From assembly GCA_001643675.2 (NCBI GenBank), contig LSRY02000012.1:682001-746000 (forward strand): DNA of 64,000 nt, given 5' to 3'. Source of the DNA: Monocercomonoides exilis PA203. Lineage: Eukaryota; Protista; Preaxostyla. Under the pieces are notes generated by a model. It worked only from the letters and a program-made list of their open reading frames with translations, made no database searches and was not told the DNA's origin. A program made the translations under genes and the position numbers. Position 1 is the first letter of the stretch, and every line of letters starts with the position of its first letter. Of the stretch, positions 7,284-62,598 are shown in pieces.

Positions 7284-7492
7284 GATAGATACAACCTAAG
7301 AGCTTTCGCAGAAATTTGATCGAAGCGACCCTTCATTAAATAAATGAAACCAAAGATTTTATCTCATGAACAGTTGTTCATTTGTTTGTATCTTTTTCTC
7401 AAATCGATTTTAATGATATTTATTGAATTTAGAAGTTTTACCATAATGAAAAACAAAGAAGAACGGTTCAATCGTAATTGTGTAAATTTCTC
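7284..7492. promoter_or_regulatory. Compact putative bidirectional promoter
   Basis: 209-bp AT-rich gap between divergent ATGs at 7283 (-) and 7493 (+). Confidence 0.45.
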
Positions 7493-34942: not shown

Positions 34943-37900
34943 ATGAAAACAACATCAGCATTATTTCGGAGACTCATTTTACTTTATGCATTATTATTGG
35001 GTAAATTTTTACAAATCGAATCCAAACCAGAGAAATTTTCATCAACACGGAAAGCTTCTGAAATAAATCACATTTCAAAAGTTCTTCGGAATTATCAAAG
35101 ATTTGAAAATGCAAACAAAAATGAACAAGCTTTGATTGAAAAAAGAAGTATATGAATTCTCAAATCATTCTTTTAACTTTAATAAACCATTAATGTTTAT
35201 GATTCCTTTTTATGTGACATTCTTTTCCTTTTCAACGAAATTTGTTTCTGTCATTATTTATGTTTTTTAAATTTTTTTAATGGACAATACCTTTTTCCTC
35301 AGGCGCAGTTCATATACAATGTCGTATATCAAATTCGACAGCTTCGTGGAGAAAATGCAAACTGTTGATAAAGAAGAATTCAATGCATTTAATGGACGAG
35401 TGCTCAAATCTGAACATTGAGGATTGCATATTTGAAATTCAAAACGATTCGCAGAATTCACCGTTTTCCTTAAGTTCTGGTAGTTTATTTCTTTTGAATG
35501 TCTCTGCAAATGTCATGAATAAATGCTCAAAGATTCGTCCATTTGTGGATTCTCCTGTTAGTTGCGCGAATTTTAGAGCAAAAGGATACATCACTATTGC
35601 ATTTTCTTCACTATGTTCATTTCAAACAATCTCAAAGGATCCACTCCTTTGTTCAAATTCGTTGTCAAGAGCTTTATTATTTAATTGTTTCTTTAGAAAC
35701 ATCTCTGGATCATGCTGCAAAGAAAACGAAAAGTGGGAACAGCCAAAGTGCGATAATTTTATTTCTTGTTGCACTTTCAACACCGTAGAGGATGAAATGT
35801 ATGGAAGAATAATGTCATCAATTGACGAAGGAAACTCTATTTGTGCTTTTAATACCACATTCCTGAATGACTTCCGCTCAGGACAAATAGGTGAGTCAAA
35901 TAATAAAACTATGAAGCAACAAATTCTTCAAGAAAATGAAAACTACATCTTCAAAGAATGCGAATGGCATTCATGTACTGCTTTAACTGGAAATGATCGT
36001 AAAACAACAAGTTCAAGCGGAGCTGCAATTTTTATCAATGGACAACTGTCTGCTTCACTAAATATTGATTCGTGTCTATTTATGGACTGCAACACAAGCA
36101 CAGATGGAGGAGCTATTTTGAGCTTGTACATCAGGAGCTTTATAATCACTAATTCATCTTTTGCATTGTGCAATGCTTTGACAAACGAAGCTGGAGGAAT
36201 ATGTGTATATCATACAAGCGAATGCTTTTCTATGAGTTGCATAAAATTCGATAATTGCTCTTGTCAAACTTATGGAGGAGGTATTATGATGGAACGTGAT
36301 GATTCTGAGAGTGAATTATGCATGTTTACGGACAACTCTTATCGTGGAATGTTTCAGCACCACAACTGCACATTCATTAAATGCAAAACAGGAAAACTTG
36401 GAGGTGGGGGAATTGAAGCATATGGATATACATCGAAATTTTTCACACTTCGAAGTTGCTCATTTGAATCATGCAGTTCTTTTAGAAATGGAGGAGGGAT
36501 TTCAGCATCTTTATCAGGAATAACAGAACTGAATCCAAAATTGTTTTATTTTTGTGCATTCAAAGGAAATAGCGGTAATGGCAAGGATGTTTATCTTGAA
36601 AATAGTGATGTCTGTTTGACTGAGTCACCATTTGTGGAATCTTTCACACTTACTGAAGGTGGAAACCACTTATTTCTTTCCAATCATGGATGGAACAAAC
36701 TTAGTTGGTTGCCTTATGGATTTATACGAAAGTTTGTTGTTGGAGAAAATGGATCAAGCATGGAAATGTGTGGGTTTTCAATAGAAGAAGGGTGCAAAAC
36801 TTTGGAAAATGCTTTGCTCAATAATACTGGAGAAAGTCATGTGAAAGCATTGATAATTGTTGGAAATTACAACTTGTTTAATATGAACGGTATGAGCTTC
36901 AATGCTATAGACATGTCCATTACTGGACAGAATTTGAAAGGTGAGCACACACAACTGCTAAATACAGGGATAGAATCAGGGCGTTCAATGTTCACTGTAA
37001 CTTCATGCACATTAGAGATAACTGATATTGAGATTGTTCATTGTAGTAATGGTTCTGGGAGGACTCTTGTTACTGGGGATGATCAAGGAGTGATTATGTT
37101 GAAAAGAGTTCAAATTGGTTTTTTGGAGGAATCTTCACAGACAGCTATTGAAGAATCTCCTTTCTACGCAGCATATGGACAGATACAATTTTCTGAATGT
37201 TGCATTACCAGATTACAGCTGAAAAGAGTTGCGCTTTTTGAAGGAGCAACAAACGTGTTGCTTAAAGATACAGAAATATCAAACATCATCCGCAAGGAAG
37301 GAAATGGAGCAATATTTGATCCAATCATAGGAGAAGGGGAGATATGGGAATTGAATAACATAAGTTTGAAAAATTGTCAGTGTGAGAACGGTAATGGAGG
37401 AGCCGTTTATGTGCGTGTGGAGAAAAGCGGAATGATGCGAATGGGAAACGTTCAAAATGTCAAGATGAGAGAGTGCAAGGTGTCAATAGAAGAGGAAGCA
37501 AAAAGAAAAGGTGGAGGGATATTTATTGATGTTGGTGATGATCAGAGCGGATTTGAATTGAAAAATGTGTTTTTTGAAGGATGTGAAGCATGGACAGGAA
37601 AAAAAATATTTTTGAGAAGCGCAAATTTGAAGCGAATTGTAAATGAGGCAAACATTGGATGGATAATGAATGATGAAGAAAAAAGAAAACTGGACGAACT
37701 TAATGGATTTGAAGGAGATACAACTGGAGAAGAGTATGTCATCCCACTGGTTGTGTATCTGTGGCATAATCTCAGCGGAGCAGTACATGTAAATGGACAA
37801 CGAGGCTTCGATTTTAGCGGATGTGGATATGAAGTGGCACCATGCTCTTCAGTTGATTGGGCTGTAGGAATATGGTGCGATCTATCACCATCAAATGAAT

Positions 37901-40900
37901 TACAAATTTTAATGGAAACTGAAATTGTTATTAAAAATGCCATTTGTTTCAGAGTTTCTTCAACAGAAACTGCTTATAGAATCATCGGAAAACAAGAATT
38001 AACTTCAATTTCTGTTGAAAATGCAATTGGAGTCGATCAGCAAACATCAATTATATATTCAAATGTTGTGTTAACTTTCGAAAATACTTTTTTTCAACTT
38101 CCAAATGTGATGAAGGAAGGAATTAACCAATTATTCTGGAGTAGTTCGAAATTAGAGCTGACAAATTGCATGTTCGAATTGATAGAAGGGACAACGATAG
38201 GATATTCATTAATTGAAATTGAAGGAGGTTCACTTGAGGGAAAGTGCGTTATAATTGGTTCTGAACTCTTTGAAACTGTTGTTGAAACGGGACATAATCT
38301 GATATCAGTTTCCGGAAGAATGAAATTAGAGGAGTGGAACTTTTTCGGCTGTGTGCAGAAGGACGGAAATGGTTCGTGCATTGACTTGAAAAGAGTGAGT
38401 CAGATAGATGGAGCAAGCATGAAGAACTGCTCATTTTGTGATTGCGAATCCCGAGGAGTGAATAGAGTTGGTGGAGCGATCGCGACAAGTGTTGAAGGAG
38501 ATGGATGGTTGACTTTCGAAAATTGCACGTTTTCGGGGTGCAAAGTTGGACAAGGACTGGAATATAATAAAGGTCTTGGTGGAGGATTCTATGTTGAATG
38601 CAATGGAGGGAGATCAGGAATTAATCTTGCAGACTTACAGTTTCAAGATTGCGAGGCTTGGAAAGGAAAGAATATATTTGTGTGCGGAGAGTCTCTCTCT
38701 CGGATAGTTATAAGAGAACATTTTGCATTTGATTTTAAACTTGATGTGAGTGATATTCCAGACCTTGAAGAAATGAATGGATATGAGAATGGAGATCAAA
38801 GTTATGCTTTGCCACTAGTGGTATTTCTTCGAGAATTCGTACCTCCTTATTACGTGGGAAATGACGGAAATGATGTGAAAGGATGCGGGTTTAAAGACTT
38901 TGCATGCCAGACAATTATGCATGGAATATCTTTATGTGATGGAATAGACCTTTCCCAAATTCGATTGCTTCCACAATTTTGCATCCGGAATCGACTTGTA
39001 TTTTGGGAAAATTCCATTCAGATGGACGTCGAAGAGAAAAACACAACAATACTGTTTGGATATGAAGGAGAATTGAATGGAAATGGAATCATTGAAATGC
39101 AAAGCAAAGTAACTATCACAGGAATTCGGATTAGTGTCGATTCGATTGTGAACGAAGAGATATCCTGCTTGCTTCACTGCAGTGGGTCAAAAACACATTT
39201 AAATGAGTGTAGTCTGGAGTGCGTAAATGGAGTAATGAAGATATCATTTATATGGATTACAAACGGGGAGATGATAATAGAGAATATGCAAATTGAATCA
39301 CTGAAATTATCATGTGGAGAAGGGTTAATATATTCAAAGGGAAACAGAACAACATGCGTGATGGAACAATGTGCTTTGAGGTTGTTAGAAGGAAACGTTT
39401 CTTTTGGAATGCTTTTATCAGCATCTGGATCAACTTTTGAGTTGAGGAATGTGGAGATTGAAAATGTTAAAGTTGTTGATTGCGGGATGATATGTTCAAA
39501 CGAAAATTCATCATTGAGTATGCATAATGTTACAATCGAAAACGAGGATCGCTTTAAAGGAAGTGGTGGAACTGTTGTTGGGGTTGTTGGAGAAGGAAAA
39601 ACGTTTGAAATGGAGAATAATACTTTGCGAAGTTGCAAGTGCATGGAGAGTGGACAGATGCGTGGAGGAGGAATTTTTATTGAGGTGAAGAAAGGAGGAA
39701 TTTTTCATTGGGACAAAGGGACCGTGCACGACTGTTTTGCGATGAAGTGTCAGGCCTTGGAGGAGGAATGTTTCTTAGATTAAGCGATGTTTCATTGGAG
39801 TATTGGATTAGAAATACAGAGTATACTGAGGATAAGGCTCATATTGGAAAGGATGTATATCTCGTTTGCCTATCTCCAAGCTTCATGGTGAATGAAGCAT
39901 GTTGGAAAGGGTCAGTGAATGAAGAAGATGAGCTGAATTCGAAGTGGGTTTATGATGACTCTGTAAGTCCGGTAATCAGCAATTCTTTGATTTTGTTTAT
40001 TTATCCTCCGTCAACAGCTGTTGTTTATGTGATGAGTGGAATAAAATCAGAGAATGATTGTGGGTATGCCCATCTGCCTTGTTCAAGTTTGATTGAAGGA
40101 TATTCAAAAATGAAGAACAATCAGACAACAATTCATCTCAATAATTCCAACAACCTTGATGGAGAGATCGATCGAAACGGAATTGGACTGACAGTTCGCG
40201 GACATACAGAGGAAAATAAGTCAAAACTTGAAATTGGGATACAAGGGCATTTCCGTATTGCGAGAGGAATTAGCACAACAGAACTTGTGCTAAGTAGACT
40301 AATAATTGATTTACCACATAAATCTGAAAAACATGAGCTCATTTATTCATGTGTTGGACGTGTTAGCGTGGAGCAGTGTGAAGTTTGTGCTGGAGAGGTT
40401 AATTCCAATACAGATTTGTTACTCTGTCGATTTGAAGGATCCGAAGGAGTGTTTGCAAGTGTTGTACTGAATGGCATCAACTTCAATGGAGATTCGGGAA
40501 TAGCGAGTGTTACCGGCGGCAAATTAACCTTGAGAAATGTTACAGTTGGAGAAATAGAAATGGAGGGAAGAGGACTAATAATTGGAAGAGATGGATTGGA
40601 AGTTGTGTTGAGAAATTGTTCATGTAATGGATGTTTGACGAAAAAAGGGCAAGTGCTGAATCTTGAGAATGCAAAGATAGTGGATATAAAAGAAAGATGC
40701 ACATTCAGGGGATGCAAAAACGAAGAAGGAAACGGAGGAGCATTATCATGCAGCATTTCTTCAGATGAGCAGGTTGAAGTGGAAGAAACAGAAATGGAAG
40801 AATGCTACGTCAATGAAGATACAGGGAAAGGAGGAGGGATGTATTTATACATGTTCGATGATTCGAAAAATTATGTTTCAATGGAAAACCCAACATTCAG

Positions 40901-43900
40901 AGAGAATAATGCATTTTCTGGAAAAGATATGTTTATTGAATGCAGAAATTTGAATGATACTGTTAACAAAAATCGATTTGTAATAAAAATTTTTGATGAA
41001 AATGGATTTCTAATTACAGATATGAAAGGAAAAGATAGAACAAACTTTAAAAACGATGATGTGGAACTCACATTATTTTTGATAAAAGGACAATTTGAGT
41101 CTGTTCTTGTGTCAGAATCGGGCTTGGACGTGTATGGCTGTGGAAAAAGAGAACATCCGTGCGAAACATTTGGAAAGGGATATGAGAATATTGATGCATC
41201 AGTGAGCGAAAAGAAGATGATCATTTCGGGAAAGATTCCAGTCACAAATGAGTTTTGCATATCTCAGTTTGTGATTGTATCATTTGATGAGGAAGAAGCA
41301 GGAATTATCGAAGTGAATGAAGGCATTGAAGGTGAGGATCAAGATTACGTTTTTCAAAATGACAAAGTGTTGCGATTGGAGAATATTGTGATTAACTTTC
41401 CATCAAAATTAAATGATCCTCATAAAATAGTTTTTAAATCAACAGGAAATGAATTAAAAATGAAGAAATGCAAGTTTCACAGTTTGACAAATGAAATCAA
41501 AGAGTTTTCCGTCGTTGAAAATTTGTGTGGAGTATTGCATTTAGTGGAGTGCGAAATACGCACAGGAATGTATTTGAGTGCTCCTTTAAAAGGAAAATCT
41601 TCAACTGTTCTTGAAACATGTACTTTTGAACATGTTTTGAGTCAGCAGCACAAGCAAGGAGGAATTATGGAAGCATTTATAAAAGAAGAAGAAATAATTT
41701 TTGTGAACGATACCACGATGGAAGAATGCGAATGCAATGAAAATGAAGGGAGAGGTGGGGGTCTATTCTTGAGCTGTGTTGAAGCCAGATCAGAGAAACC
41801 GTTTATATTTGAAGGAGTGAGATTTAGGAACAATAAAGCATGGAAAGGGAAAAACATTTTTGTTCTTTGCAGTGACTTAAATAAAACTGTAAACACGGAG
41901 ACATTTGCGTTTGGAAATGAAGGATTTGAAGATGATGAATCATTATATTGTGGAACAGACGCTTTTCATACTGATACCGATCTGCTTCGATTTTTAGTTA
42001 CATACAGTTCATCAATAGTTCATATATCATCTCGAGGTTTCGATGTTAAGCGATGTGGGAGCAAGAAAGATCCATGCCAAACATTTATAGAGGGAATGAA
42101 GCATTTCAATGTCGAAGAAATAACCAAAAAGATGACAATTGAGGGTTGTATTCCATTTCGAAATGGATTTGATCTTTCAGGATTTTGCATCTCATCTGGG
42201 CAGAGGGATGAAGAAGATGAAGGATATGGAGAAATAACTTTCTTGAAAGAAACAGAACAAGAAGAGGACCCAGAGATGATTAACAAGGAAGAATTAACAT
42301 TGACATTGTTAAAATTGTGGGGCTCAGAATCACTGAGAAGTGAGCAAAGAGGGCTTATTGCGAACGAAAATGGAAAGACACATTTGGAAAGATGCAGGAT
42401 CGGATGGACAGGATTAACAGAAGCAACGATGGATTGCAGCATTGCCTGGATTGTCAAAGGTGAACTTAGTGTTGAGTGTACTGTAATTGAGAAGATAAAT
42501 GTGAGAAACAATTTATTTTATATTGCAGATGGATGCAAAGTTCACGTTAAAGAAGTGGAGATCGAATCTGTGAAAATCGTAAGTGGAAGTATTTTTCGAG
42601 TGGTTCCTTTTATAGATCGAAGTGATGGAGAGAAGACAGAAATGAAGATTAATGAAAGTCGGTTTTTAAATGTTATTCGAGAGTCGAATGGGGCATGCAC
42701 ATTTTATCCTTCTTCTTGCAAACATATTGAGCTATTGATCGATGAAACAACTTTCATTCTATGTCAATCAGCAGAATCTGAGATAGGAGGAATGGGATTT
42801 TTTGAATTGAGTGAAAAAGGGTCGCTTCAAATGAAAGGTGGATTTGTGAATCAGTGCGGGTGTAGTCGAACGAAAGGAAAAGGCGGAGGAATATATTTGA
42901 GGAGTTTTGAGACAGGAAAATTGGATTTTGTTTTTGATAGATGTAAATTTACGGAGAACAGTGGTTGGAAGGGAAGAGATATATTTGTTGAATGTGAAGA
43001 TATCGAGAGGCAGATCCACGAGCAACAGTTCCAGATGGACTTGAATGAAGAGAAATATAACAGAATTAATGCAATTTTTGGGATAGATAACACAAAATAC
43101 ATAGACGAACCTGTTGATTTGATTGGATTTATTACCTATTTGCAAGAGAACATGATTATTGTTTCAAGTTCTGAAGGGAAAGGAGGAAGTGATGAAAGAC
43201 AGTGCGGGAAAATCAATTTCCCATGCAGAAGTGTTGAATATGGCCTTGGACATTTATATGGGGATATGTTTTTAATGTTGATTGTGGACGAAGCAAGTAT
43301 CATAGAAATGGAGATTAGGCTAGAAGAGATGACTTTACGTGGGCGAACACAAACAAAGGCAAGAATAGATATTGATGAAAGCATGAACTCAGAACTTGAA
43401 TGGGTTATTGATGTTGCGGGAAATGTTGTTGTTGAAGGAATATCTTTTTTTGTTTCGGTGACGGAAAACAAATCTCATCAATTTGTTTTTGGAGTTCAAA
43501 ATGGCTCGTTGAAGATTGTATTTTGTTCGTTTGGCAACAATATCATAACCAGCTGTTTTGGAAACGAAAAAAGTCTTGAATATAGGATTCCTGGAATTTT
43601 GAAAGCTATGGAAAGTACAATCACAATTGAGAAAGGAGATCTAAAGGAGATGGAAGTGGATAAATTAATTGATTGCGAAGAATGTGAGTTAGACATTTCT
43701 CAGCTGAAAATTTCATCTGTCAAAATAAATGGGAAAGGATTTAAACTAATTGACACAAGAACTTATATTAATGAATTAATATGTGTGAACCTATATTCGA
43801 CAATGTCGTTGTTTTCAACGAATTGCTCATCTGAATCTGCCTTTGTGATGAAATCTTCATCAATGAAAATAATAAGATTTGATAACAATTCAAAATGCAA

Positions 43901-46160
43901 ATTATATTTGAAGAATGAAAATTTTCCAGAAAATTTCTTTTCGGAAAGTGTTATAGAAAGTTCCTCAAATTCACTTTTTATTAAAATGGAAAACTGCACT
44001 TTTAGCCGAGATACGAATGGAAAAGAGAAAGGGAGCATTTTGTGTTTGGAAAATTGTGAAGAAGGTTGCTTCGATAATTGCTTGTTTGCTGGAGGAATTT
44101 TAAATGAAATCGGAAAAGATTTGAATAATAACCGTGAAAAGGAGCTGTGTAAGTGGAATGGATCTCTTGTGGATTTGAAAAAGAGCAAAATTGAGATGAA
44201 AGACACAATGATCTGCAACTCCTCAAAAGGAGGAATGAGTGTGAGTGGAGGGTACGTGACGATTGAGACAGGTAATTTCAGCAGCAACAGCCCTTTGATT
44301 GAGAATTACCCATCTGTGCGAAGAAACATTATTTGCTCTGATTCTGCTTCGCTGACTATTTCCAGTTTGAAAGGAGGAGATGGCTTTGAGAAAAACACAT
44401 CACTTTGGCTTTTGAATGAAGGATGCCTCTTTGAAGGGATTGCATCAGAAAGAGCATCTCCATTCTTCATTCCAGTGTTAGAGAGTGTGGAAACAAAAGA
44501 AGAAGGAGCAGAAGTGGATATTGTGTTCAAAGGGAAGCTGCTGCTCCCTTGCAACTTATCGTTCATGGTTGTGAAACAAATAGGTGATGAAAAGCAGATC
44601 GAAAAATATGGGTTTGATGCAAGCGGTTTCATATCAGAGAAAGAGATACATGGGTCTGTTCCTGTCAAGACAATTGAAGGTGTACCAAGTGAAGCAGAAG
44701 TGAAAGTGTGCATTCTTTTTGGGGATATTAATAATCCATCTTCAACAGATTCTTTCAACCTGAAGAACAGAAGTGAACCCAAAACAAATGGAGATGAAAG
44801 GATTGCTGAAGGAAGAAAAGAAGGAAAATCGATATGGCCAATCATTGTGATTATTATGGCCTTTGTTCTTTTAATAATTCTAATGATTGCGGTGATTTCA
44901 ACTGTTCGATGGAGAAAGCAAAAGAGAAGAACGGAAGAATTAGAAATAATTGTGGAAGATACAGTGAAGAAAGATCCGAAGGCGATTGAAATGGTGACGA
45001 TGGAAATGTCGCCTGAGGAGCAGTGGAGGAGAGCAGAGAAGGAGGCGGAGAAGAAGAATGAAGAGAGGATAAAGAAGAGGGTGTATGCGAAAAGCTTGGG
45101 ACACTCGGAATCATCGGAGCATCTTCTATCTGAGAGTGGATCGACTGAATATATCTTGGGAAGAGATTCAGACAAGATTCCAGAATGGGCATTGGAGAAG
45201 GTTGATGAGAAAGAAGAAGAGATAAGAAAGAGAACTCCGTCGCCATCCATTTCATCCACTTCAACCACAGACACTTCAGACACAGAATCCACTTTTGTTC
45301 GATCAGAGAGTCTGTGTCCAACCACTTCATCGATGTCGAATCTGGTGGATGCAATGGCCTGCTCTTCACCACATGAGAAACTGATTGTGGACTTGAGGGA
45401 TTCGCTGTTCATGCTTTTGCATGGAAGAAATGAGAAAAAAGAGATGGCGATTGGCACCTTTCAGGAGAGAGAATATGCAGCTGTCCAAATCCTGTTCTGG
45501 GTGGCTAATCTGGCACTGCACTCCTTTGATGAAATGAACAATCCGCTCTCTTCCCTTGCCAATCTGAGTCCACATATTGTGTTGTTCTCAGAACATATGG
45601 TTATCTGCATTGTGATGCACTCAGATTTATTGTCCGATGATGATTCAGATTCATCATCCATCTCTTCGTCAACTGTTGTGACATCTGCAAGTGATTGTGA
45701 TGATGATGATGATTCTCTTCCCTCGTCTGCGTTTGAGGATGAGGATGACTTCAAAAAAGAGTGCCTGAGGTGGAAGGCGCCTGAGCTGCTGATGAACAAG
45801 AAGATGGGGGCAACCAAGGAGTCGGTTTCATTCTCAATTGGGATGATGCTGTGGGAGTGCCTGACACTCAAGATCCCGTTTGGGGAGTATGAGGCAGAGG
45901 CAGCTGAGCAGAAGATTGTGAATGGAGAGAGGCCAGATATGAAGCTGGTGGAGAAGTGTGGAATGTCGCATGTTGTAAGAAAATGCTTTTCGCCAGATTC
46001 TTCGCAACAACCAACGCTGGGCAATCTGAAAAGAGAGTTCATCCAGCGCTTTCCGGCAGGGGCAGTGATGCTGACTGTGACAGATGCAATCGACTTGGAG
46101 GAGCCATCAAAAGAGGAGGAAGAAAGAACAGGAGAAGACATAGGAACCATGTTGTCTTGA
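34943..46160 (+). CDS. Giant single-pass receptor 2 (same family, ~3687 aa); exon 34943-35147, intron 35148-35302, and a 1-nt frameshift at 39735-39738 joining track ORFs 35365..39783 and 39708..46160
   Basis: Signal-peptide exon MKTTSALFRRLILLYALLLG splices (GTATAT...CTCAG) in frame to the 35365 ORF. One extra T in the T4 run restores DCFCDEVSGLGGGMFLRL, matching the paralog motif GCFCSSSNGIGGGILLRL. Seven CG..C modules, TM at ~44830-44905, pseudokinase tail. Confidence 0.8.
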
Positions 46161-46464
46161 GAGATAATGGAGAATAACAGTGAGCAAAAATGCCAGAAAC
46201 TATTTTTAAGTTTCTCAAGAGAATGCATTCCGTCAACGTGGAAACCAGAAAATCAAGAATGACGAATTGTGTATGATGCAGAAGCCTTTCTGTTGCAATA
46301 CATAATTTTTCATGAAAAATTCAATGAAACATTTTTTGCAGATGATTATTTCTTTTTTTCATTTTCAATTGGATATCCATTAACACCCCCTTGCAAAAGC
46401 ACGCTTCAGGTTTTGGGCACTTTCACTTTTGAAAGATAGAACCCGAGCTCTCAACCGATTTTCC

Positions 46465-46525
<61 letters not shown>

Positions 46526-47613
46526 CCTTTTTCCTTTTTTGTTGAAATTTTGTGTTTATGAAAATGTTTGTGATTTTAAAAGAGTTTTCAGTTAGTTGAG
46601 ATTTATTTTTCGTTTGAAATATATGTTTTCAATTCATATTCATTTGTGATTCAATTGAAAGATTTTGAGTTTTTATCAAATCAACACCTTTTGAATTTCT
46701 TTTTATTTTCCCCTTTTCCGAATTATTTGTTGTAATTCATTTTTTCTTTAATTTCAGAAATGTGAATCTTATTTTGTTGATTTGGGCATGTGAAGTGCAT
46801 CTTTCTTTTGAGAGAGAATTTGGTTTTAAATTGATATTAGCTGTTATCTTCTCAATTGGAAGATAACTCTTATATTTTTGAATGTTTTTGCTCTGTTAAT
46901 AAAGCAAATTATTGTTCTAAACAGTTTATAAGACAAAAAATAAATAAATAAATAAAATAAAATAAAATAAAATTTAATAAAATAAAATAAAATAAAATAA
47001 AATAAAATAAAATAAAATAAAATAAAATTAAATAAAATTAAATAAATAAAATAAAAAATAAAAAATCATCATCATGCAATTCAATGAAAACAACGTTCAG
47101 TCAAAACAGGGTGCAACCTCACGGCATATAGTCGTATCCATTTTAGCGTCAACTTTTTAATGTGACTTTTTCCATTTTTGGAACTTTTTTTGTTTTTGAC
47201 TGCCAACTTTCAACAAACATTGATTTACTTTTTTCACTTTAATACAATGTTTTTACATATTTTAAACAATTCATTACTAGTTTGTTTTATTATTTTAGTT
47301 TGTTTCTCACTGAGTTATAGCGTTTTTTTGAATTTTTGAAAGACACTTTTCTCAGCGAACTAAGCTTTTCCAAAAAATGTGAAACACAGTTTTGTAAACT
47401 GTTAACATTTATCTATTTATGCTTCAAATCTCAAGTTCTACATTTATTTATTTTGACACTTTTTTCTCATTTTATTTTTTCACAAACATGCAAACATAAA
47501 ACTGATTATTTCTTTGAAAATATGATGAAACAATATAAATAAAATTATGATATAAATAGCATATACTTTTTCAATGAAGTGTTGTTAAAATGAAACATTA
47601 ATTTTTTCTATTT
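44466..47613 (+). repeat. Left arm of ~6.3 kb palindrome
   Basis: Reverse complement of 47687-50800; stop 46160 mirrors stop 49106. Differences I found: one substitution (46009 vs 49257) and homopolymer lengths. Confidence 0.97.
46937..47064 (+). repeat. (AAAAT)n microsatellite, mirrored at ~48230-48358
   Basis: Direct inspection. Confidence 0.9.
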
Positions 47614-47686
47614 GTCAAGAACTTAACTTTGTTTCAAAAACTTGATCATTGATCATTTTAAGTTTGCACCATTTGTCTTTAAAAAT

Positions 47687-48767
47687 AAATAGAAAAAATT
47701 AATGTTTCATTTTAACAACACTTCATTGAAAAAGTATATGCTATTTATATCATAATTTTATTTATATTGTTTCATCATATTTTCAAAGAAATAATCAGTT
47801 TTATGTTTGCATGTTTGTGAAAAAATAAAATGAGAAAAAAGTGTCAAAATAAATAAATGTAGAACTTGAGATTTGAAGCATAAATAGATAAATGTTAACA
47901 GTTTACAAAACTGTGTTTCACATTTTTGGAAAAGCTTAGTTCGCTGAGAAAAGTGTCTTTCAAAAATTCAAAAACGCTATAACTCAGTGAGAAACAAACT
48001 AAAATAATAAAACAAACTAGTAATGAATTGTTTAAAATATGTAAAAACATTGTATTAAAGTGAAAAAGTAAATCAATGTTTGTTGAAAGTTGGCAGTCAA
48101 AAACAAAAAAGTTCCAAAATGGAAAAAGTCACATTAAAAAGTTGACGCTAAAATGGATACGACTATATGCCGTGAGGTTGCACCCTGTTTTGACTGAACG
48201 TTGTTTTCATTGAATTGCATGATGATGATTTTTTATTTTTTATTTTATTTATTTAATTTTATTTAATTTTATTTTATTTTATTTTATTTTATTTTATTTT
48301 ATTTTATTTTATTTTATTAAATTTTATTTTATTTTATTTTATTTATTTATTTATTTTTTGTCTTATAAACTGTTTAGAACAATAATTTGCTTTATTAACA
48401 GAGCAAAAACATTCAAAAATATAAGAGTTATCTTCCAATTGAGAAGATAACAGCTAATATCAATTTAAAACCAAATTCTCTCTCAAAAGAAAGATGCACT
48501 TCACATGCCCAAATCAACAAAATAAGATTCACATTTCTGAAATTAAAGAAAAAATGAATTACAACAAATAATTCGGAAAAGGGGAAAATAAAAAGAAATT
48601 CAAAAGGTGTTGATTTGATAAAAACTCAAAATCTTTCAATTGAATCACAAATGAATATGAATTGAAAACATATATTTCAAACGAAAAATAAATCTCAACT
48701 AACTGAAAACTCTTTTAAAATCACAAACATTTTCATAAACACAAAATTTCAACAAAAAGGAAAAAGG

Positions 48768-48801
<34 letters not shown>

Positions 48802-50800
48802 GGAAAATCGGTTGAGAGCTCGGGTTCTATCTTTCAAAAGTGAAAGTGCCCAAAACCTGAAGCGTGCTTTTGCAAGGGGGTGTTAATGGATATCCAATTG
48901 AAAATGAAAAAAAGAAATAATCATCTGCAAAAAATGTTTCATTGAATTTTTCATGAAAAATTATGTATTGCAACAGAAAGGCTTCTGCATCATACACAAT
49001 TCGTCATTCTTGATTTTCTGGTTTCCACGTTGACGGAATGCATTCTCTTGAGAAACTTAAAAATAGTTTCTGGCATTTTTGCTCACTGTTATTCTCCATT
49101 ATCTCTCAAGACAACATGGTTCCTATGTCTTCTCCTGTTCTTTCTTCCTCCTCTTTTGATGGCTCCTCCAAGTCGATTGCATCTGTCACAGTCAGCATCA
49201 CTGCCCCTGCCGGAAAGCGCTGGATGAACTCTCTTTTCAGATTGCCCAGCGTTGGTCGTTGCGAAGAATCTGGCGAAAAGCATTTTCTTACAACATGCGA
49301 CATTCCACACTTCTCCACCAGCTTCATATCTGGCCTCTCTCCATTCACAATCTTCTGCTCAGCTGCCTCTGCCTCATACTCCCCAAACGGGATCTTGAGT
49401 GTCAGGCACTCCCACAGCATCATCCCAATTGAGAATGAAACCGACTCCTTGGTTGCCCCCATCTTCTTGTTCATCAGCAGCTCAGGCGCCTTCCACCTCA
49501 GGCACTCTTTTTTGAAGTCATCCTCATCCTCAAACGCAGACGAGGGAAGAGAATCATCATCATCATCACAATCACTTGCAGATGTCACAACAGTTGACGA
49601 AGAGATGGATGATGAATCTGAATCATCATCGGACAATAAATCTGAGTGCATCACAATGCAGATAACCATATGTTCTGAGAACAACACAATATGTGGACTC
49701 AGATTGGCAAGGGAAGAGAGCGGATTGTTCATTTCATCAAAGGAGTGCAGTGCCAGATTAGCCACCCAGAACAGGATTTGGACAGCTGCATATTCTCTCT
49801 CCTGAAAGGTGCCAATCGCCATCTCTTTTTTCTCATTTCTTCCATGCAAAAGCATGAACAGCGAATCCCTCAAGTCCACAATCAGTTTCTCATGTGGTGA
49901 AGAGCAGGCCATTGCATCCACCAGATTCGACATCGATGAAGTGGTTGGACACAGACTCTCTGATCGAACAAAAGTGGATTCTGTGTCTGAAGTGTCTGTG
50001 GTTGAAGTGGATGAAATGGATGGCGACGGAGTTCTCTTTCTTATCTCTTCTTCTTTCTCATCAACCTTCTCCAATGCCCATTCTGGAATCTTGTCTGAAT
50101 CTCTTCCCAAGATATATTCAGTCGATCCACTCTCAGATAGAAGATGCTCCGATGATTCCGAGTGTCCCAAGCTTTTCGCATACACCCTCTTCTTTATCCT
50201 CTCTTCATTCTTCTTCTCCGCCTCCTTCTCTGCTCTCCTCCACTGCTCCTCAGGCGACATTTCCATCGTCACCATTTCAATCGCCTTCGGATCTTTCTTC
50301 ACTGTATCTTCCACAATTATTTCTAATTCTTCCGTTCTTCTCTTTTGCTTTCTCCATCGAACAGTTGAAATCACCGCAATCATTAGAATTATTAAAAGAA
50401 CAAAGGCCATAATAATCACAATGATTGGCCATATCGATTTTCCTTCTTTTCTTCCTTCAGCAATCCTTTCATCTCCATTTGTTTTGGGTTCACTTCTGTT
50501 CTTCAGGTTGAAAGAATCTGTTGAAGATGGATTATTAATATCCCCAAAAAGAATGCACACTTTCACTTCTGCTTCACTTGGTACACCTTCAATTGTCTTG
50601 ACAGGAACAGACCCATGTATCTCTTTCTCTGATATGAAACCGCTTGCATCAAACCCATATTTTTCGATCTGCTTTTCATCACCTATTTGTTTCACAACCA
50701 TGAACGATAAGTTGCAAGGGAGCAGCAGCTTCCCTTTGAACACAATATCCACTTCTGCTCCTTCTTCTTTTGTTTCCACACTCTCTAACACTGGAATGAA
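47687..50800 (-). repeat. Right arm of ~6.3 kb palindrome
   Basis: Mirror of 44466-47613; unique 73-bp spacer at 47614-47686. Confidence 0.97.
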
Positions 50801-53800
50801 AAATGCAGACACCCTTTCTCCTACAATCCCTTCCAATGAACATCCTTCATCCAATATCCACAACGATGTATTTGGCAATACTCCATCCCCTCCCTTCAAG
50901 CTCGTAACTTTCAATTTAGCGGAGCTTTCACACAAAACATTCCGTCTTACCGATCCATAATTCGCTATTGATGGATTATTGCTCTCAAATTTCCCATCAT
51001 ATATCTCCATATTACCTCCTGACAAGGAAATCCCTCCATTTTCTGAATTTACCAGTGTTGAATCCTTTATCAGCCCAGAACAATTTTGTAGATCGATCAT
51101 GGAGCCATTCCACTCACATAGCTCTTCAAATGGTTCTTTGTTGGCTCTCAACTCTTGTGTGCTTGCTGCTCCATCAAACACGCACGAAGATAAGCAAACA
51201 TCCGATAAATTCATCAAAGCAGCAATTCTCCCCTTTTCTGAGGATGAAATGCATTTTTGGTTGGTGCAATTCTCCAACTCCACCAACAAAGATGAAGATG
51301 AAGTGGCCAAACAGCACGGACCAAGCGAATCTCTCGTTATGTTTTGAAATGAAGACTGCTTCAGCAGGAATGTCGTAGCGTTTGATGTCACACTCACTGC
51401 ACATCCTTCTCCAAGCATCGCGCTGCAAATGGCCAAGAAATTCATCTCAACATTTGCATCTTCGCATTCAACAGAAACCAAGGATTTTTTTGAAGCGCGT
51501 GTATTGTCGAGTTCCAGGTGGCTGCACTGGATGTTTGAATGGACTCCTGGACTGTCTGAGGAAAACATAATCAAGCTTGCTTTGCTCTCTGCATTCTTGA
51601 TTTGAATTTTCTGGAGCTGAGAGTTTTTGCAGCTCCGAAGGATGAGAGCTGATCGATCAAACATGCAGCTGGAAACAAGCACTTGCTGCATAGAAAGGTT
51701 CACCAGATTGTGGAAGTTCAACAACACACCAGAATTCATATCAGAAATGTTCAAGTCCATAAATGAACAATACTGTCCGCCTCTTGCTTCCACACACGAA
51801 GAAATGAGACGAAGGGAGGCAAAAGTGCATCCGTTGATTGATAGTCTGCCATTCTCCACAAGAATTATTGAGCAGTTCAATTTATATTTGGAGTTTCCAT
51901 TCGAATCTTCTTGAGTAAATGCTGTATCTGCAATCAACAAGTTGCCATCAGTCAGCGATAACAAACTTGAATGAGAAGAAGAAAAAGCACTTCCAAACAA
52001 AAACGAAAGAGATTCCATTTTCACTCTCGACCAGCACGAAACGAGACTACCCTTCTTTCTTTCAATGATCCTGTTCAGGAGGATTGTCCCTCTGACGCCT
52101 TCTGCATCCAGCGACTTGATCGAGACATCATGGATGCTTGCTTCACCAGATACCAGAGAAATCTCGTCAACGAGCAAGTTGCTGTAAACAGAAGGAATGA
52201 TGTGAGACAATGCAATATTCAAGGAAGAGCAGGGCGCATTGATAGCTCCGCACTGGCGTGAATCTGAGGTGTTGTCGGATGAAGAAGATGCAAATATCGT
52301 CTCGCTCTGATATACAACCACAAGCAGCAACAGATCTTGCTCGTCTCCATAGTCTGGTGCTGTGCATCCCCACATAGCAAATTCTCGGACAAAGGGAGGT
52401 CTGAAATCGAGCTGGAATAGCTCAATGCTGATTTGAGATTTGATATTTGTGCATCTCACATACACGTCTCTTCCAACAAATGCTTTGTTCTCCATGAACG
52501 TAGTGTTTTTCAGCAGGAAAGGAAGCAAGCCTTCACTTTTGATTGATGAGCAATCCAGAAATATTGCTCCTCCCCTTCCAGTCGCCGAGCAGAAACATCC
52601 AGAGATTGTGGAAAAATTGCACTCGAAATATCCTCCTTCGTTCAATTTCATGACCATTCCTCCACCTTTCTCGCTTTGGCTGCTTCCACAGTTCTTCATC
52701 GACGTGTTTTGCACAGACACACTGCAAGGCTCGCTGCCAGTGCAGCTGATGATGGACGGCTCAGACGGAGCATTTTGGAGAAGCGAGAAAAGTGTGCAAC
52801 ATTTCAGCTGAACTGTTGGACTGTTGCCTTCATTCAATCTATGTGAGTTGCCTCGCAACTCAGTCTGCGCAAACGCTGATATTATGCTTTTACCCATCAG
52901 TTCCATGTTGTTCATTGAAACATTTGTCAAATCAATGCTGCTGCCATGCGATGCCATCAGAATGTGACTTTTGCATTTGATGGATTGGAACGAGCAGAAT
53001 GATAATTCGCAAGTTCCCGACAAGCAGGCAATAATGCAATAAGGAATGGCTGCTTCAGAAGCGCTGGCAAACAAGCAACCTTGAGCAGCAAAAGAGTTGC
53101 CAGTCGTGCCTATCAGCTTCGTCTGCTTCCATTCGGATCCATCCCCGCAGCAGATTTCAATGCTAACAAGGGTGCATGTTCCGGTGTTCACCAGCACAGA
53201 ATCGCTTTCTTCTTCCTTTCCTGCCTGAGGCGAAATGGCTGCTCCAAAAGTCAGGGAAGGGTGAGACTTGACATCAACTGAAGTCACAGTTACGTTTGAA
53301 ATGTCAACCTCGCTGTTCACCTGTGCTTCTTCGATGATTACGAAAGTGTTCATGCTTGGTTGTGCTGGATCTTCCAAAGCACGAAAATGCTTCTGCCCAT
53401 ACTCCATTGTTGCACATGGCTCTTCTCCACTCCCACACCGGAGGACATCCCACCCGCTGTTCTTGCTGAGATGGATTTCCTGAGAAGCAAATCCAATCAG
53501 AAATCTGCACAGATCGAAGTTTGTTTTTGTGGTGTCATTCCCCACGAACAAGTTTGTATCGCTTGCTGTCTCACTCACTTCAAATGCCAATGTCTGTTTT
53601 GTGATGGAAACGTTCAGGTCTGACGAGAGAAAGAACATGTTTTTCCCGTGCTTTGCAGAGCATTGATCGAAGGCTATCTGCTGGAAGGAGAATGCATTGT
53701 AAGCCGAACAGTCGAAATAGATGCCTCCTCCTTTACCATCTGTTTCATTTTCCGCGCAGCATTTCGTGAACGTGGCGTTTTCCATCGTAAATTGCCCTTG

Positions 53801-56800
53801 AGCTTCAACAGCAACTTTCATTGAGCCTCCATCGATGCTCTGAGCGCCTTTGGCATTCGTGACGTTCCAATTCAAACACTCAACCCGGCTCGAAATTGAG
53901 GACGAAATCAACGCAGCGCTGTTTGCATTGCCATTTGTTATCCCTTCAAAAGAGCATTGTGAAAGAGAGATAACCTCGTCACTCGTTGTATAGTCGTTCA
54001 GCTGTTTGGATGTTAACGATGGAATCACACCGATGAGAGGCTGATCGCCAATGTCTGTGTTCTTAACTTTCAAAAAAATGATCGTTGTTGAGGTGCTGGC
54101 TGTGTTCTCGCTCACTGCAATCGGCGTATGCTGAAGATTCGCTGAACTCAATTGGCAGTAGTCCATATTGAGACTTCCTCCGCACATCTGAAAAAGCCAA
54201 TAACTTATCTGGCCGGGCTCTCCCATTTGCACCCCAAATGTGCACTTTGTCAGCGACATGTTGCTCTCAGAAGACAAGAATATCAGCGTTTCTATTTCAG
54301 CATCGAACGAAGATGGTAGCAAAAAGTGGATTAATTCAATGGACACATTCCCCGTGGCTGATATCACTTTTCCACTCAAAGCATTCAGCGACTTTGCACA
54401 AGTCATTTCGGCTTTTGAAGTGTTTGATGATCTCAAGATCAAATCGGGATGATTCAGTTCGCTCTCAATTATAGCTGATTTGACGATAGCTATTGTTTTT
54501 GCGTTTTCCTCTTCCAGTCTCCCCACACAATAATCAATTGACTGACACGGATAATCAGAGAACCCGCACATCACAGTATCAGCGCTATCCTCTCTTCCAA
54601 CATGGATTGCGCTTCCAACTTCATCCAGAAACAGAACCAACGGGATCGAATGCTCATAATCAGTCCCAGTGAACCCGCACAAATCATCAAAGGAGCTATG
54701 CCCCAGAGCATAAGCAAAAGGAAGCGTTTCGTTCGTGATCGATTTCTTGAGGTCTGGTGATTGAACAAACAAGTCCTTTCCATGCTTCGCTTTATTCGGC
54801 TTTTCTGATGAAAAAGAAGGATTTGTGATGGCAAATGCTGCATCCGAGTGCTCAAGATTCAGAAAGATCCCTCCTCCAAATCCCACCTGCGAATCGAAAG
54901 GCGCCTCGCACTCTTCGAAGAAACATCCAGAAATTGTTGCAGAGCATGTGTTTGGCAGCGAGAGGAACAGTGCACCGCCTCCATTTCCATCACCAGAAAT
55001 AATACAATGCTCAAAGTTGCATCCGCTTATTGAAGCTTCGCAACCATTCACTGACCCTTCGCACCAAAGTGCATTCAGGCATCCGCCATTCTGCTCGCTC
55101 TCAACATTCCAGAATGAAGCATTGGCAAGAGAAATAGTTTTGCAATCCGACAAAGCAATTGCACTTCCTTGCGAAAATCCAAATCCAGAGACATTTACTA
55201 ATTCGATCGTCAACGAACCTTCTTCAACTTGAATCAAGGATTTTGTTGAGGCCTGAGTCGATTGGGCGCTTTTGGTGAAACTGCACAGCTCCAACCTAAT
55301 TGAACCAGATGAGCCAATTGCAATTGCTGATCGGTTGAACACGCAAGCAAAGGAAATCTTCTTTGCATTCAGTGAGCCATTCCCTATAGAGATCAAGCAG
55401 TCATTTGACGAGGCTTCGCGACTCTTTATTACCGATGAGTTGTTCTCTGCTCCGATGAGAACGATATTTCTCCAGTCGATGTCAATCATGTCTTCTTTGA
55501 ATTCTTCACTGTCCATAAAAACATTCTGCCCCAAATATGAATTCCATCTCGTCACCCCATATTCCACCGTTTGGCATTCTGAATTTGTTCCTCCGCAAGT
55601 GTCCTCGTCGCTTCCAGAATTGCTGATGAGTATTTCTGGCTGAGCTGTTGGTAAATATGAATCGTATGAAGCACCTCTATCTCCGCAGTCCAACGCATAT
55701 GTAATGCATTGCACGACTTTCCTTGGAGCAGTTGAAAGCGTAAAACTTTGCAATATCTGAATTGTGTTATTTAACAAGCTATATCCCTTTCCAATATAAA
55801 TATCTGCTGCGTGTGTCGTTTTCTGCACTGTATTGTTTTCAAATAAGCAAAACTGAATGTTGACGATTTTACTGTAATCATTAAATGAAACATCAAAGCC
55901 GCCTGAGCCCAGTTGTGAATCTCCTTTTAATAAATAGCTATTTGACATCACAAAAGTAACTTTAGGATTCTGTAGAAATACAGTTCCAGCATAAAAATTA
56001 AAAGCTTTGTTGCATTTGAAGATAGTGTTGTAAATTGATCCACTTCCTCCAATATACCATCCAACGCTTCCTCCATAAGCTGCTGAGCAATTTTCAAAAG
56101 TGCAGCCAATAACAATAGAAAATTTATTTAAAATATGAGCAAATGCTCCTCCGATAGATTGTACTCCCGTTCCTCTGCAATTATTAAATATTGAATTTTC
56201 AATGAAGCAGTCGCTTCCATTGGTAAAAATTGCACCCCCGTAACCATATTGACCATTATATGTATCGGTGCATTCGGAAAACGTGCATTTTCCTACAATG
56301 AGCTTGGCACTTCCGCCAACTGAAATTGCACCCCCATGCAAAGCGCTACATTCTGCAAAACTGCAATCTTCAAAGGTGATGTCCCCCCCTGAAAATGTTT
56401 GTGCTGCGTTTGTATAGGTCTGGTGAGAATATATGTTTCTCGAACGAATAAAAGATGTGTTCAAGGAGCTGAAATCATATCCGCGGCAGCCAGAAATGAT
56501 CACCCCATAAAATGGACAAACACAATCAGCGACCATGCAGCCTTCCATTTTGCTCTCCTGCAAAGAATGCTTTTGTAGCAAGTTTTTGCTGCTGCTCTGA
56601 ACAGAAATGTTGTGGAAGCCGCAAAAAGAAGCTGAGGCAAATGACAAATCGACATCTCCAATGAACGAATTCGCAAGCGAGGCACAAAACGAAAAAAATG
56701 TGCAACACAAAACATGAACACGTCCCGTCAAAGGTTGTGAGCGAGAGCTTGCTGAGACAAGAGATGGCCATGTCTGTTGCTGAAAAGTCCTTTGCAAAGA

Positions 56801-57337: not shown

Positions 57338-57544
57338 GGTTCCTGCTCTCTCTTTGCCGCACAAAACAATGTTAAATTTCAAATTTAAATTTATTTTGAG
57401 TTTTGATCAATTTTTCATAATGTTGGTTATATGTTCGGATCACACGTTCTTCATTTGATTTTTAACACTGAAATTGTATTTGCTTGTATCTGTTGTTCTG
57501 GTATCATTGTTCGGAGTTGAGCTTGATAATGCGTTTTAAGCATA

Positions 57545-61900: not shown

Positions 61901-62331
61901 GCGTTAGCGATAAACAAGAAAAAGTCCAGAGCAGTGTTGATGACACCAGAGAGAAAGGGAGCATGGCTGCAACAGCAGAAGATAGATCATATTCGTCTGA
62001 GGACAGACAACATGTCCACGAGATGGACAATACAGAAGAAGAGGGGAGCGCCATCGCTCATTCCAACACTGAGAGCATTGGAGAAGAAATTGAACAGCCT
62101 GGACATCACAATACAAACGGAACCCATCCCGGGAGAGCAGAACAAGGAAGCAGAAGCACTCAGCCGGATGACGAGAAAGCCGGACTATGCACTGAGGGGG
62201 AAGAAAGTTGCAGAGATATTGCAAATAGTCGCACCGAGAATACTAGATTCAATCTTAGAACAGATTGCGCCGGTGCACTGCGGAAGAGTTTGGAGGCTAT
62301 CCTCTCTGAGAATGGAGAGAGAGAAAGAAAT
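58960..62331 (+). mobile_element. Decayed DIRS-type (tyrosine-recombinase class) retrotransposon, 3'-truncated
   Basis: GC-richer block with a broken gag-like region followed by RT-RNase H. The left boundary is approximate. No recombinase or terminal repeats are visible. Confidence 0.7.
60710..62331 (+). pseudogene. Reverse transcriptase-RNase H pseudogene (DIRS-like)
   Basis: WRKILDCRALN..HFKMD; WMTTLYIS*AYQHV (first catalytic Asp read as Tyr, TGA at 61109-61111); MPFGAKDAPRIFTK; YLDV instead of YLDD; RNase H ITDASELGWGA, LRTDN, IPGEQNKEAEALSR. Confidence 0.88.
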
Positions 62332-62598
62332 GGGGGAAAATATGGACTTTCAAGCTTTTTTTGTACAAGGCATTGAAAAAGTGCTTCACTCATAACTTTA
62401 TTTCACTTACTCAAATTAAATAATAAATTTGATGTTCATATCTGCACACAGGTGTCGTTGAAATCAAAACAGAAAGTTTCCAACTTTTTTCAATTGTCAA
62501 AAAATGGAGTCATTATTATTGTGTTTTTTGATCTCAAAAAGTCAATGGAAAGTGAATAATATTTCAATAAAAAAGCTTGAAGTTGCATATTTCCCCCC
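62332..62598 (-). mobile_element. MITE family B copy 4 (267 bp, best-preserved ~30-bp TIRs)
   Basis: GGGGGAAAATATGGACTTTCAAGCTTTTT ... AAAAAGCTTGAAGTTGCATATTTCCCCCC; flanks AAAT (left) and ATAT (right). Confidence 0.8.

Follow-up and report, generated by a model that had tools for sequence, protein, structure and literature searches.

Likely inverted copying of a neighbour's tail, seeded at a foldback transposon, in a palindrome between two giant kinase-like genes of Monocercomonoides exilis

How did two convergent genes with different ectodomains come to end in the same tail, mirrored around a short spacer? This question is raised by a palindrome in a 64,000-nt stretch of the M. exilis PA203 genome (contig LSRY02000012.1, positions 682,001 to 746,000), which we call the window. 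Both genes, here gene A and gene B, are members of the largest gene family of M. exilis, a tyrosine-kinase-like family whose tail motif occurs 902 times. The palindrome was delimited by an inverted-repeat search, BLAST and global alignment:

44466-47613: left arm (3148 nt)
47687-50800: right arm (3114 nt)
47614-47686: spacer between the arms (73 bp), with the same coordinates as the loop of the foldback element described below
46009 (+): sole substitution between the arms, an A, whose partner at 49257 is G on the same strand (Q in gene A, R in gene B)

These arms and this spacer reproduce exactly those of the initial annotation. The coding part of each arm is 1695 nt long (564 codons plus stop) and comprises a TM and a kinase-like C-lobe, and the 3' DNA of each arm, which the annotation had also noted, measures approximately 1.45 kb. 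The annotation's count of one substitution plus homopolymer length differences agrees with the difference list of the global alignment. In that list, a run of 27 T at 46469-46495 is found in arm A only, and the other differences are seven single-base length changes at six places (46535, 47175, 47185, 47229, 47323-47324 and 47372). The outermost mismatch beyond the arms is 44465/50801. Arm identity falls from 100% to about 68% across the 88 nt outside this position, and farther out it is about 45-60%. As the annotation had described, identity ends abruptly at the FFIP motif: the boundary lies between its two F codons, and the alignment and ORFs show both genes in frame through it. The homology right upstream of the junction is weak at this level, which counts against homology-anchored copying.

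The two sides of the junction in gene A were compared with a paralogue, A2 (C6:1702470-1704269), which is a single open frame of 3630 aa. The features of gene A are as follows:

35365..39783 (+): 1472-aa ORF at the upstream side of gene A, covering the 5' portion of an ectodomain gene of ~3600 aa
39708-46160 (+): main ORF of gene A
39740 (approx.) (+): 1-nt deletion relative to A2 that splits the frame
39708..44465 (+): native ectodomain of gene A, the apparent recipient; matches A2 up to 44465
44466..44474 (+): crossover interval of 9 bases, TTCATTCCA (codons F-I-P), identical in A, A2 and B
44466..46160 (+): apparently copied tail of gene A, with juxtamembrane region, TM (44832-44906), low-complexity linker, C-lobe (45747-46037) and stop
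46161..47143 (+): apparent inverted copy of the gene B 3' flank, equal to 48151-49105 except for homopolymer lengths

Up to 44465, gene A and A2 are about 95% identical in nucleotides and 93% in amino acids. Past this position identity falls to 65-90%. Sequence specific to A ends with base 44465, and bases that match B but not A2 start at 44475. Because the match of about 95% to A2 stops at 44465, gene A appears to be the recipient of its tail, and the A/A2 divergence of about 5% indicates that the tail would have been gained after a recent duplication. A Pfam search of the gene A ectodomain (39708..44465) found no domain. The arrangement before the event was sought downstream of A2, where a different neighbour was present and the foldback element was not found. 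The split of gene A near 39740 lies in a 96% identical alignment with one gap (CTGTTTTG-CGATG vs CTGTTTTGTCGATG) and is a true frameshift or else a fault of the assembly.

Gene B lies on the opposite strand:

49106-57382 (-): ORF of gene B
50801..57337 (-): ectodomain of gene B, with first ATG at 57337 and a hydrophobic N-terminus; its subfamily has members of 2750-2800 aa
49106..50800 (-): native tail of gene B, the putative donor copy, with TM at 50360-50434
48151..49105 (-): native 3' flank of gene B, the putative template, placed by alignment; the direction follows from the A/A2 and B/relatives comparisons

When gene B was aligned with its subfamily relatives L038 and L039, there was no step in identity at 50800. 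Since it lacks this step, gene B is the probable donor, an assignment made by the missing step and not by a positive mark. The two ectodomains belong to different subfamilies: the closest relatives of the B ectodomain are 79% identical to it and the closest of the A ectodomain 93%, and A and B are absent from each other's match lists among matches listed down to 35-39%. Therefore, A and B are not the diverged twins of a whole-gene palindrome. We also rejected a transposon with long terminal inverted repeats (TIRs) carrying pieces of genes, given that both flanks of the palindrome are long open frames in register.

At the axis of the palindrome lies a transposon:

47144..48150 (no strand assigned): foldback (MITE-like) element of ~1.0 kb; dispersed copies number at least 40, have the same ends and are 70-82% identical
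47144-47613: left inverted end
47614-47686: conserved loop
47687-48150: right inverted end

The inverted ends of the element are about 470 bp each, its termini are TAGGGTCAAC.../...GTTGACCCTA, and it folds into a near-perfect hairpin (-517 kcal/mol). The ORF list has no ORF of at least 100 aa within 47144-48150. A check for target-site duplication, covering only four copies, found TA adjoining the element ends in three of them. With dispersed copies, defined ends, long TIRs and no long ORF, the element is a foldback or MITE-like non-autonomous transposon. It was present before the palindrome formed. A related element lies at the centre of a palindrome on C9, and the loops of other palindromes contain transposase fragments.

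The shared tail is only partly kinase-like. Its Pfam kinase match covers profile positions 162-257 of 258 only, and its PDB matches start at the APE motif. Read by eye, the HRD and DFG places appear to be LAN and HSD, and the tail does not have the complete catalytic domain (N-lobe plus catalytic motifs) of an active TKL protein kinase. The tails of other family members are 72-78% identical to the palindrome tail in amino acids, and the range for all paralogue pairs is about 67-82% (5th to 95th percentile). Tails of genes on the same contig are more alike (81% vs 71%), regardless of ectodomain. Older exchanges were mapped in 32 family members, with breakpoints mostly from -320 to +341 nt around FFIP and a second group at about +1420; the pairs were picked by discordance between ectodomain and tail, which inflates the clustering at FFIP, and we do not claim it as significant.

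Further tail-to-tail pairs with inverted tracts of identity, which the initial annotation had proposed to look for, are common. Nine of the 11 close convergent pairs examined are palindromes, and their end points differ. One of them, L032, ends about 290 nt further in, and arms elsewhere are from 3.7 to >5.5 kb long. Three paralogous palindromic units on C1 have arms that are 98.4-99.7% alike within a unit and 90-93.8% alike between units, with a common spacer that is 90-96% alike. Units on C7 have the same pattern. This greater likeness within units than between them indicates that arm-to-arm gene conversion does operate in palindromes of this genome. The annotation had offered a template switch or arm-to-arm conversion as the cause of the palindrome. 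For the switch, the nine shared bases at the junction point to guidance by homology; conversion has its support in other M. exilis palindromes.

We consider it likely that the tail and 3' flank of gene B were copied onto gene A in inverted orientation, by copying that was anchored in homology and seeded by the foldback inverted repeat. The starting state would have been two giant TM/pseudokinase paralogues lying tail to tail, with the foldback transposon of about 1 kb between them. DNA breakage or fork stalling within gene A may have triggered repair, which would have copied the neighbouring gene B inverted, taking 1695 nt of tail and about 980 nt of 3' flank. One end of the tract would be anchored in the ~470-bp perfect inverted repeat of the transposon, so that the turn of the palindrome falls within the 73-nt loop. 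At its opposite end, the tract would be anchored in the nine identical bases at the conserved FFIP codons, so that the product is in frame. The native tail and 3' flank of gene A would have been lost. Repair may have proceeded by snap-back hairpin priming and then annealing to A, or by invasion with template switching (SDSA/BIR), with the same product. The comparisons bear out the structure, the donor and recipient, the junction interval, the axis element and the recurrence of such palindromes. The locus has the features of a foldback duplication, namely near-identical inverted arms, a short loop, a hairpin-capable repeat at the axis and homology at the outer junction. Foldback inversions of yeast begin at repeats that form hairpins, and second events mediated by homology finish them (PMC7467729, PMC10622511). 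In M. exilis, NHEJ is reported to be missing and HR to be present (PMC6759080), and the missing end joining may favour such repair. The rearrangement is of a known kind and seems to be a repair accident of a type that is common in this genome. The near-identity of the arms could reflect a recent event, arm-to-arm conversion or both.

The window was assembled with Canu from Nanopore data, and the palindrome could be an artefact of that assembly, if a chimeric read had folded back or paralogues had been wrongly joined. The arms do differ mainly in homopolymer lengths, and the centre of the palindrome is covered by run X1 only, which probably fed the assembly; two older DNA runs have zero depth over 46100-48300, and the loop turn is seen in X1 alone. 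Nevertheless, we regard an artefact as very improbable. Our read evidence consists of 31-mer contigs of the sequencing runs, in which depth is swamped by paralogues. The joint between gene A and the tail is present in a 2016 DNA contig (44450-44641, zero differences) and in a 2024 RNA contig (44367-44495), both independent of the Nanopore assembly, and both contigs end at the limit of 31-mer contig reach into a repeat. The joint is in frame and at a homologous position, the flanks are two different genes that each continue for kilobases, and the element at the axis is genuine and dispersed. Because the tails of paralogues are just 80-85% alike, a false overlap would not yield 100% identity. 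Similar structures also exist, with spacers from 73 bp to 2.5 kb.

Another explanation is an old palindrome, in which continuing arm-to-arm conversion kept the inner 3.1 kb identical and the outer parts were left to diverge. In that case near-identity would be uninformative on age, and the conversion pattern in the C1 and C7 units fits such a history. We find it unlikely, since the ectodomains come from different subfamilies, the comparison with A2 places the gain of the tail after a recent duplication and identity falls from 100% to 68% at a very sharp edge, not gradually. Conversion may keep the arms alike, but does not account for how they arose. The initial annotation had gone further and proposed a variable/constant receptor-diversification system. 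A dedicated system of this sort would place changing ectodomains on one signalling tail at a fixed junction. The older breakpoints near FFIP and the likeness of linked-gene tails regardless of ectodomain could be read this way. However, clustering of breakpoints is expected where homology begins and is inflated by the choice of pairs. The end points vary among palindromes, and the family has no single constant tail. The axis is an ordinary dispersed transposon, the recipient gene A, as assembled, carries a frameshift, and neither a recombination signal nor a linked enzyme was observed. This proposal did not hold up, and we give it hardly any credence.

Homology-anchored inverted copying places this locus beside the foldback inversions of yeast and human (PMC7467729, PMC10622511, PMC3907307), with which it shares an inverted duplication, a short unique loop, a hairpin-capable repeat at the axis and a second junction made by homology between dispersed repeats. 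In contrast to those, the M. exilis event is fixed, natural and interstitial, with only 3.1 kb per arm, and it ends in a paralogue a few kb away, giving an in-frame chimeric gene and not a rearranged chromosome arm. It is known from the sequence of its product, and hairpin-capped or dicentric intermediates are only putative. As Rozen et al. reportedly described in 2003, sex-chromosome palindromes are kept alike by arm-to-arm gene conversion. Like them, the palindromes of M. exilis have gene-bearing, nearly identical arms with a short spacer, and their arms evolve in concert. Unlike theirs, the M. exilis arms are far shorter and end inside genes, so that only the 3' parts are common, and their origin is traceable to a single donor and a single recipient. 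In Giardia muris, also a metamonad, identical VSP genes occur in pairs, tail to tail or head to head (PMC7641422). The two cases share a surface-protein family and frequent inverted identical pairs, but in G. muris whole genes are identical and other genes lie between them (PMC7641422), whereas the M. exilis pair shares only the tail, under unrelated ectodomains and around a foldback-transposon axis.

A text search of two M. exilis genome papers found no mention of 'palindrom' or 'gene conversion'. The locus is a clean natural case of an inverted duplication whose donor and recipient, two junctions and seeding element are all legible in the sequence, and it shows how a repair accident can swap a domain of a receptor-like gene in frame. 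Anyone annotating such genes, mapping reads to them or building trees of the family should treat identical tails with caution. Palindromes seeded by transposons, along with arm-to-arm conversion, are a possible, though on balance doubtful, candidate for the main route by which tails move between linked genes of this family of about 900 members. If this were true, the tails of genes in one chromosome neighbourhood would undergo concerted evolution as their ectodomains diversify, a process that the missing end joining would favour. These findings suggest that the largest gene family of the mitochondrion-less M. exilis has been shaped by palindromes and local tail exchange.

The palindrome joins the ends of two convergent transmembrane (TM)/pseudokinase paralogues, gene A and gene B. 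Its coordinates in the initial annotation proved exact to the base: an inverted-repeat search, a BLAST comparison of the window's left half with the reverse complement of its right half, and a global alignment all agreed. The features are as follows.

39708-46160 (+), long open frame of gene A
44466-47613, arm A
44832-44906 (+), TM helix in the gene A copy of the tail
47144-48150, foldback element with inverted ends of about 470 bp, delimited from aligned copies
47614-47686, spacer of 73 bp
47687-50800, arm B
49106-57382 (-), long open frame of gene B

In the global alignment, the arms differ by a single substitution (46009/49257), a 27-T run present in arm A and absent from arm B, and seven further single-base length differences at six places, nearly all in T runs. 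Beyond 44465 and 50801, homology persists at about 68% identity for 88 nt and then at 45-60% farther out. As annotated, both frames stay in register through the boundary, and the crossing point separates the first from the second F codon of FFIP, the conserved motif where ectodomain meets tail. Each arm consists of the 1695-nt tail, about 980 nt of gene B 3' flank and one inverted end of the foldback element. Within the 3' flank, a short-period, imperfect repeat (46928-47077 and 48217-48366) gives rise to many inverted matches at an offset; reads there were skipped as repeat.

The 564 residues in common comprise a juxtamembrane stretch, a single TM helix, an acidic or serine-rich linker and a kinase-fold C-lobe. 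The label "pseudokinase" is a fair description of this tail, since the Pfam kinase match is confined to profile positions 162-257 of 258 and alignments with solved kinases, TAK1 among them, begin no earlier than the APE motif. All homologues of the palindrome genes were from Monocercomonoides exilis. The Nanopore assembly of strain PA203 has 82 Mb in 101 contigs (PMC8767320), and tyrosine-kinase-like proteins are the organism's largest gene family (PMC8767320, PMC6759080); the terms "palindrom" and "gene conversion" occur in neither genome paper. With a degenerate 26-nt pattern representing the tail motif GMMLWEC, 902 occurrences were counted in the genome and none in a reversed control. Other family tails are 72-78% identical to the window tail in protein and 79-86% in DNA. 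A third, apparently intact member lies in the window at 22437-30254 (-), with 2605 aa and a hydrophobic N-terminus; its tail, outside the palindrome, can be aligned with the palindrome tail and is clearly diverged. Elsewhere in the window, a calpain-type cysteine protease domain is encoded by an ORF of 1090 aa at 7478-10750 (+), and reverse transcriptase and RNase H domains by an ORF at 61190-62395 (+), which is likely a piece of a retrotransposon.

When the genome was searched with the central 600 bases of the palindrome and the copies were fetched and aligned, at least 40 other places matched at 70-82%; every one of them matched on both strands, and the end points were shared. These copies define the axis as a MITE-like foldback element, about 1.0 kb long, with the termini TAGGGTCAAC.../...GTTGACCCTA. 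Its loop, which is the spacer of the initial annotation, is kept across copies. Folded as single-stranded DNA, the element is predicted to form a nearly perfect hairpin (-517 kcal/mol). Because this inverted-repeat element is dispersed and its loop conserved, the palindrome turns inside the loop of a pre-existing inverted repeat.

The ectodomains indicate which gene received the tail. With the 600 boundary-proximal residues of ectodomain B as the query, the relatives found, at 79%, 78% and lower identity, belong to a subfamily whose genes encode 2750-2800 aa, and gene A was absent from the listed matches. Ectodomain A has one close relative (93%), a paralogue elsewhere in the genome that we call A2 (contig C6:1702470-1704269); the remaining matches reach at most 41% over the compared stretch, and gene B is absent from those listed. 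Since the two ectodomains fall with different relatives, the idea that genes A and B are diverged twins was rejected. Base by base, gene A is about 95% identical to A2 through 44465, and from 44466 identity falls to 65-90%, the level typical of unrelated family tails. Gene B compared with two relatives shows no such step at 50800. This difference makes gene A the recipient: it lost its own tail and gained the tail and 3' flank of gene B, inverted. Fine mapping places the last A-specific base at 44465 and the first B-specific base at 44475, so that the switch lies within nine bases, TTCATTCCA, common to A2-type and B-type sequence. As assembled, gene A also has a 1-nt deletion at about 39740.

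To judge whether the palindrome is real, contigs of public runs were compared over 43900-49899. Over 44450-44641, one contig of a 2016 DNA run matches the window at every base, passing from A-specific to B-type bases at the junction. Another, of a 2024 RNA run produced in a different study, spans 44367-44495 and departs from the window at 44409 only. The two extend into the repeat to the 31-mer contig limit. The joint of gene A to the tail is thus backed by DNA and RNA contigs, which are support and not proof, because they reach 16 and 30 letters where 31 are required on each side of the junction. Run X1, from which the assembly was probably built, is the only one that shows the turn at the loop, since the two older DNA runs have zero depth over 46100-48300. 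Four observations speak against an artefact: two different genes form the flanks, the joint keeps the reading frame and falls at a homologous site, the element at the axis is real and dispersed, and paralogue tails are only 80-85% alike, too little for a false overlap to give 100% identity. Position 44409 is T in the contigs of all four runs and in A2, and C in the assembly; a polishing error, an allelic difference or a short patch of conversion could account for this.

The initial annotation suggested looking for further tail-to-tail inverted pairs, and these were found. Nine convergent pairs with a spacing below 8 kb were present among the first 100 motif matches listed, and another search added two. 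Nine of the 11 are near-perfect palindromes (arm identity 98.2-99.98%, spacers of 73 bp to 2.5 kb, arms of 2.5 to more than 5.5 kb); the other two are not palindromic. A fixed junction was not borne out, as end points vary between palindromes and some arms include far more of the genes. At locus L032, the arms stop about 290 nt closer to the axis than FFIP, immediately ahead of the TM helix; its flanks are in frame with 35% protein identity, making it a second tail-sharing pair. The palindrome on contig C9 is centred on a related foldback element. Judged by eye, the loops at L033:3793-6110 and L036:3734-6271 hold pieces of an IS1595/Merlin-like transposase ORF, and L034 and L036 also hold small-GTPase-like pieces.

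Tail sharing was also seen across the family. Among 32 members, a sample biased because it consists of related best matches to the window tail, identity over the ectodomain-proximal 466 residues correlated weakly with tail identity (r = 0.41). For pairs whose ectodomains are less than 50% identical, tails in this sample average 81.2% identity on the same contig vs 71.3% on different contigs, a difference reached in none of 5000 label shuffles. In identity profiles, the starts of older shared tracts lie from -320 to +341 nt relative to the FFIP point, and many tracts extend a few hundred bases past the stop. Homology-limited exchange would give such clustering near FFIP, which is inflated by the choice of pairs. 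Some tract-sharing genes lie at a distance from each other in direct orientation, which means that palindromes cannot be the sole route. One tail tract, with the same limits in each gene (about -240 to about +2100 nt), is common to three same-strand genes on contig C58 (L006, L017, L018) whose ectodomains are unrelated (32-35% aa identity) and which are spaced hundreds of kb from one another.

One palindromic unit is present on contig C1 in three paralogous copies. Arm identity is 90-93.8% between units (spacers, 90-96%) and rises to 98.4-99.7% for the two arms of one unit; a left arm is no nearer to the left arms of other units than to right arms. The arms therefore evolve in concert, and the near-identity of the window's arms need not reflect youth alone. 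The unit at the very start of C1 (L054, C1:1-9900) has arms of more than 4.1 kb, compared with 2.5 kb in its two paralogous units, as if its arms had grown.

The best reading of the palindrome's origin is a single homology-anchored copying event. The inverted repeat of the foldback element would be the first anchor, the conserved membrane-proximal coding region the second, and the inverted neighbour gene the template. Two candidate paths would give the same product: invasion with template switching, or snap-back priming on a hairpin, as in yeast foldback inversions, which are finished by homology-mediated second events (PMC7467729, PMC10622511). The part of the initial interpretation that proposed a homology-directed switch, possibly with conversion between the arms, stands. 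The proposed variable/constant diversification system was rejected: junctions vary, tails differ across the family, and the axis is a transposon. The window palindrome is a new, well-resolved case of a known kind of rearrangement. In M. exilis, non-homologous end joining is reported absent and homologous recombination kept (PMC6759080). This combination may explain the frequency of such products.
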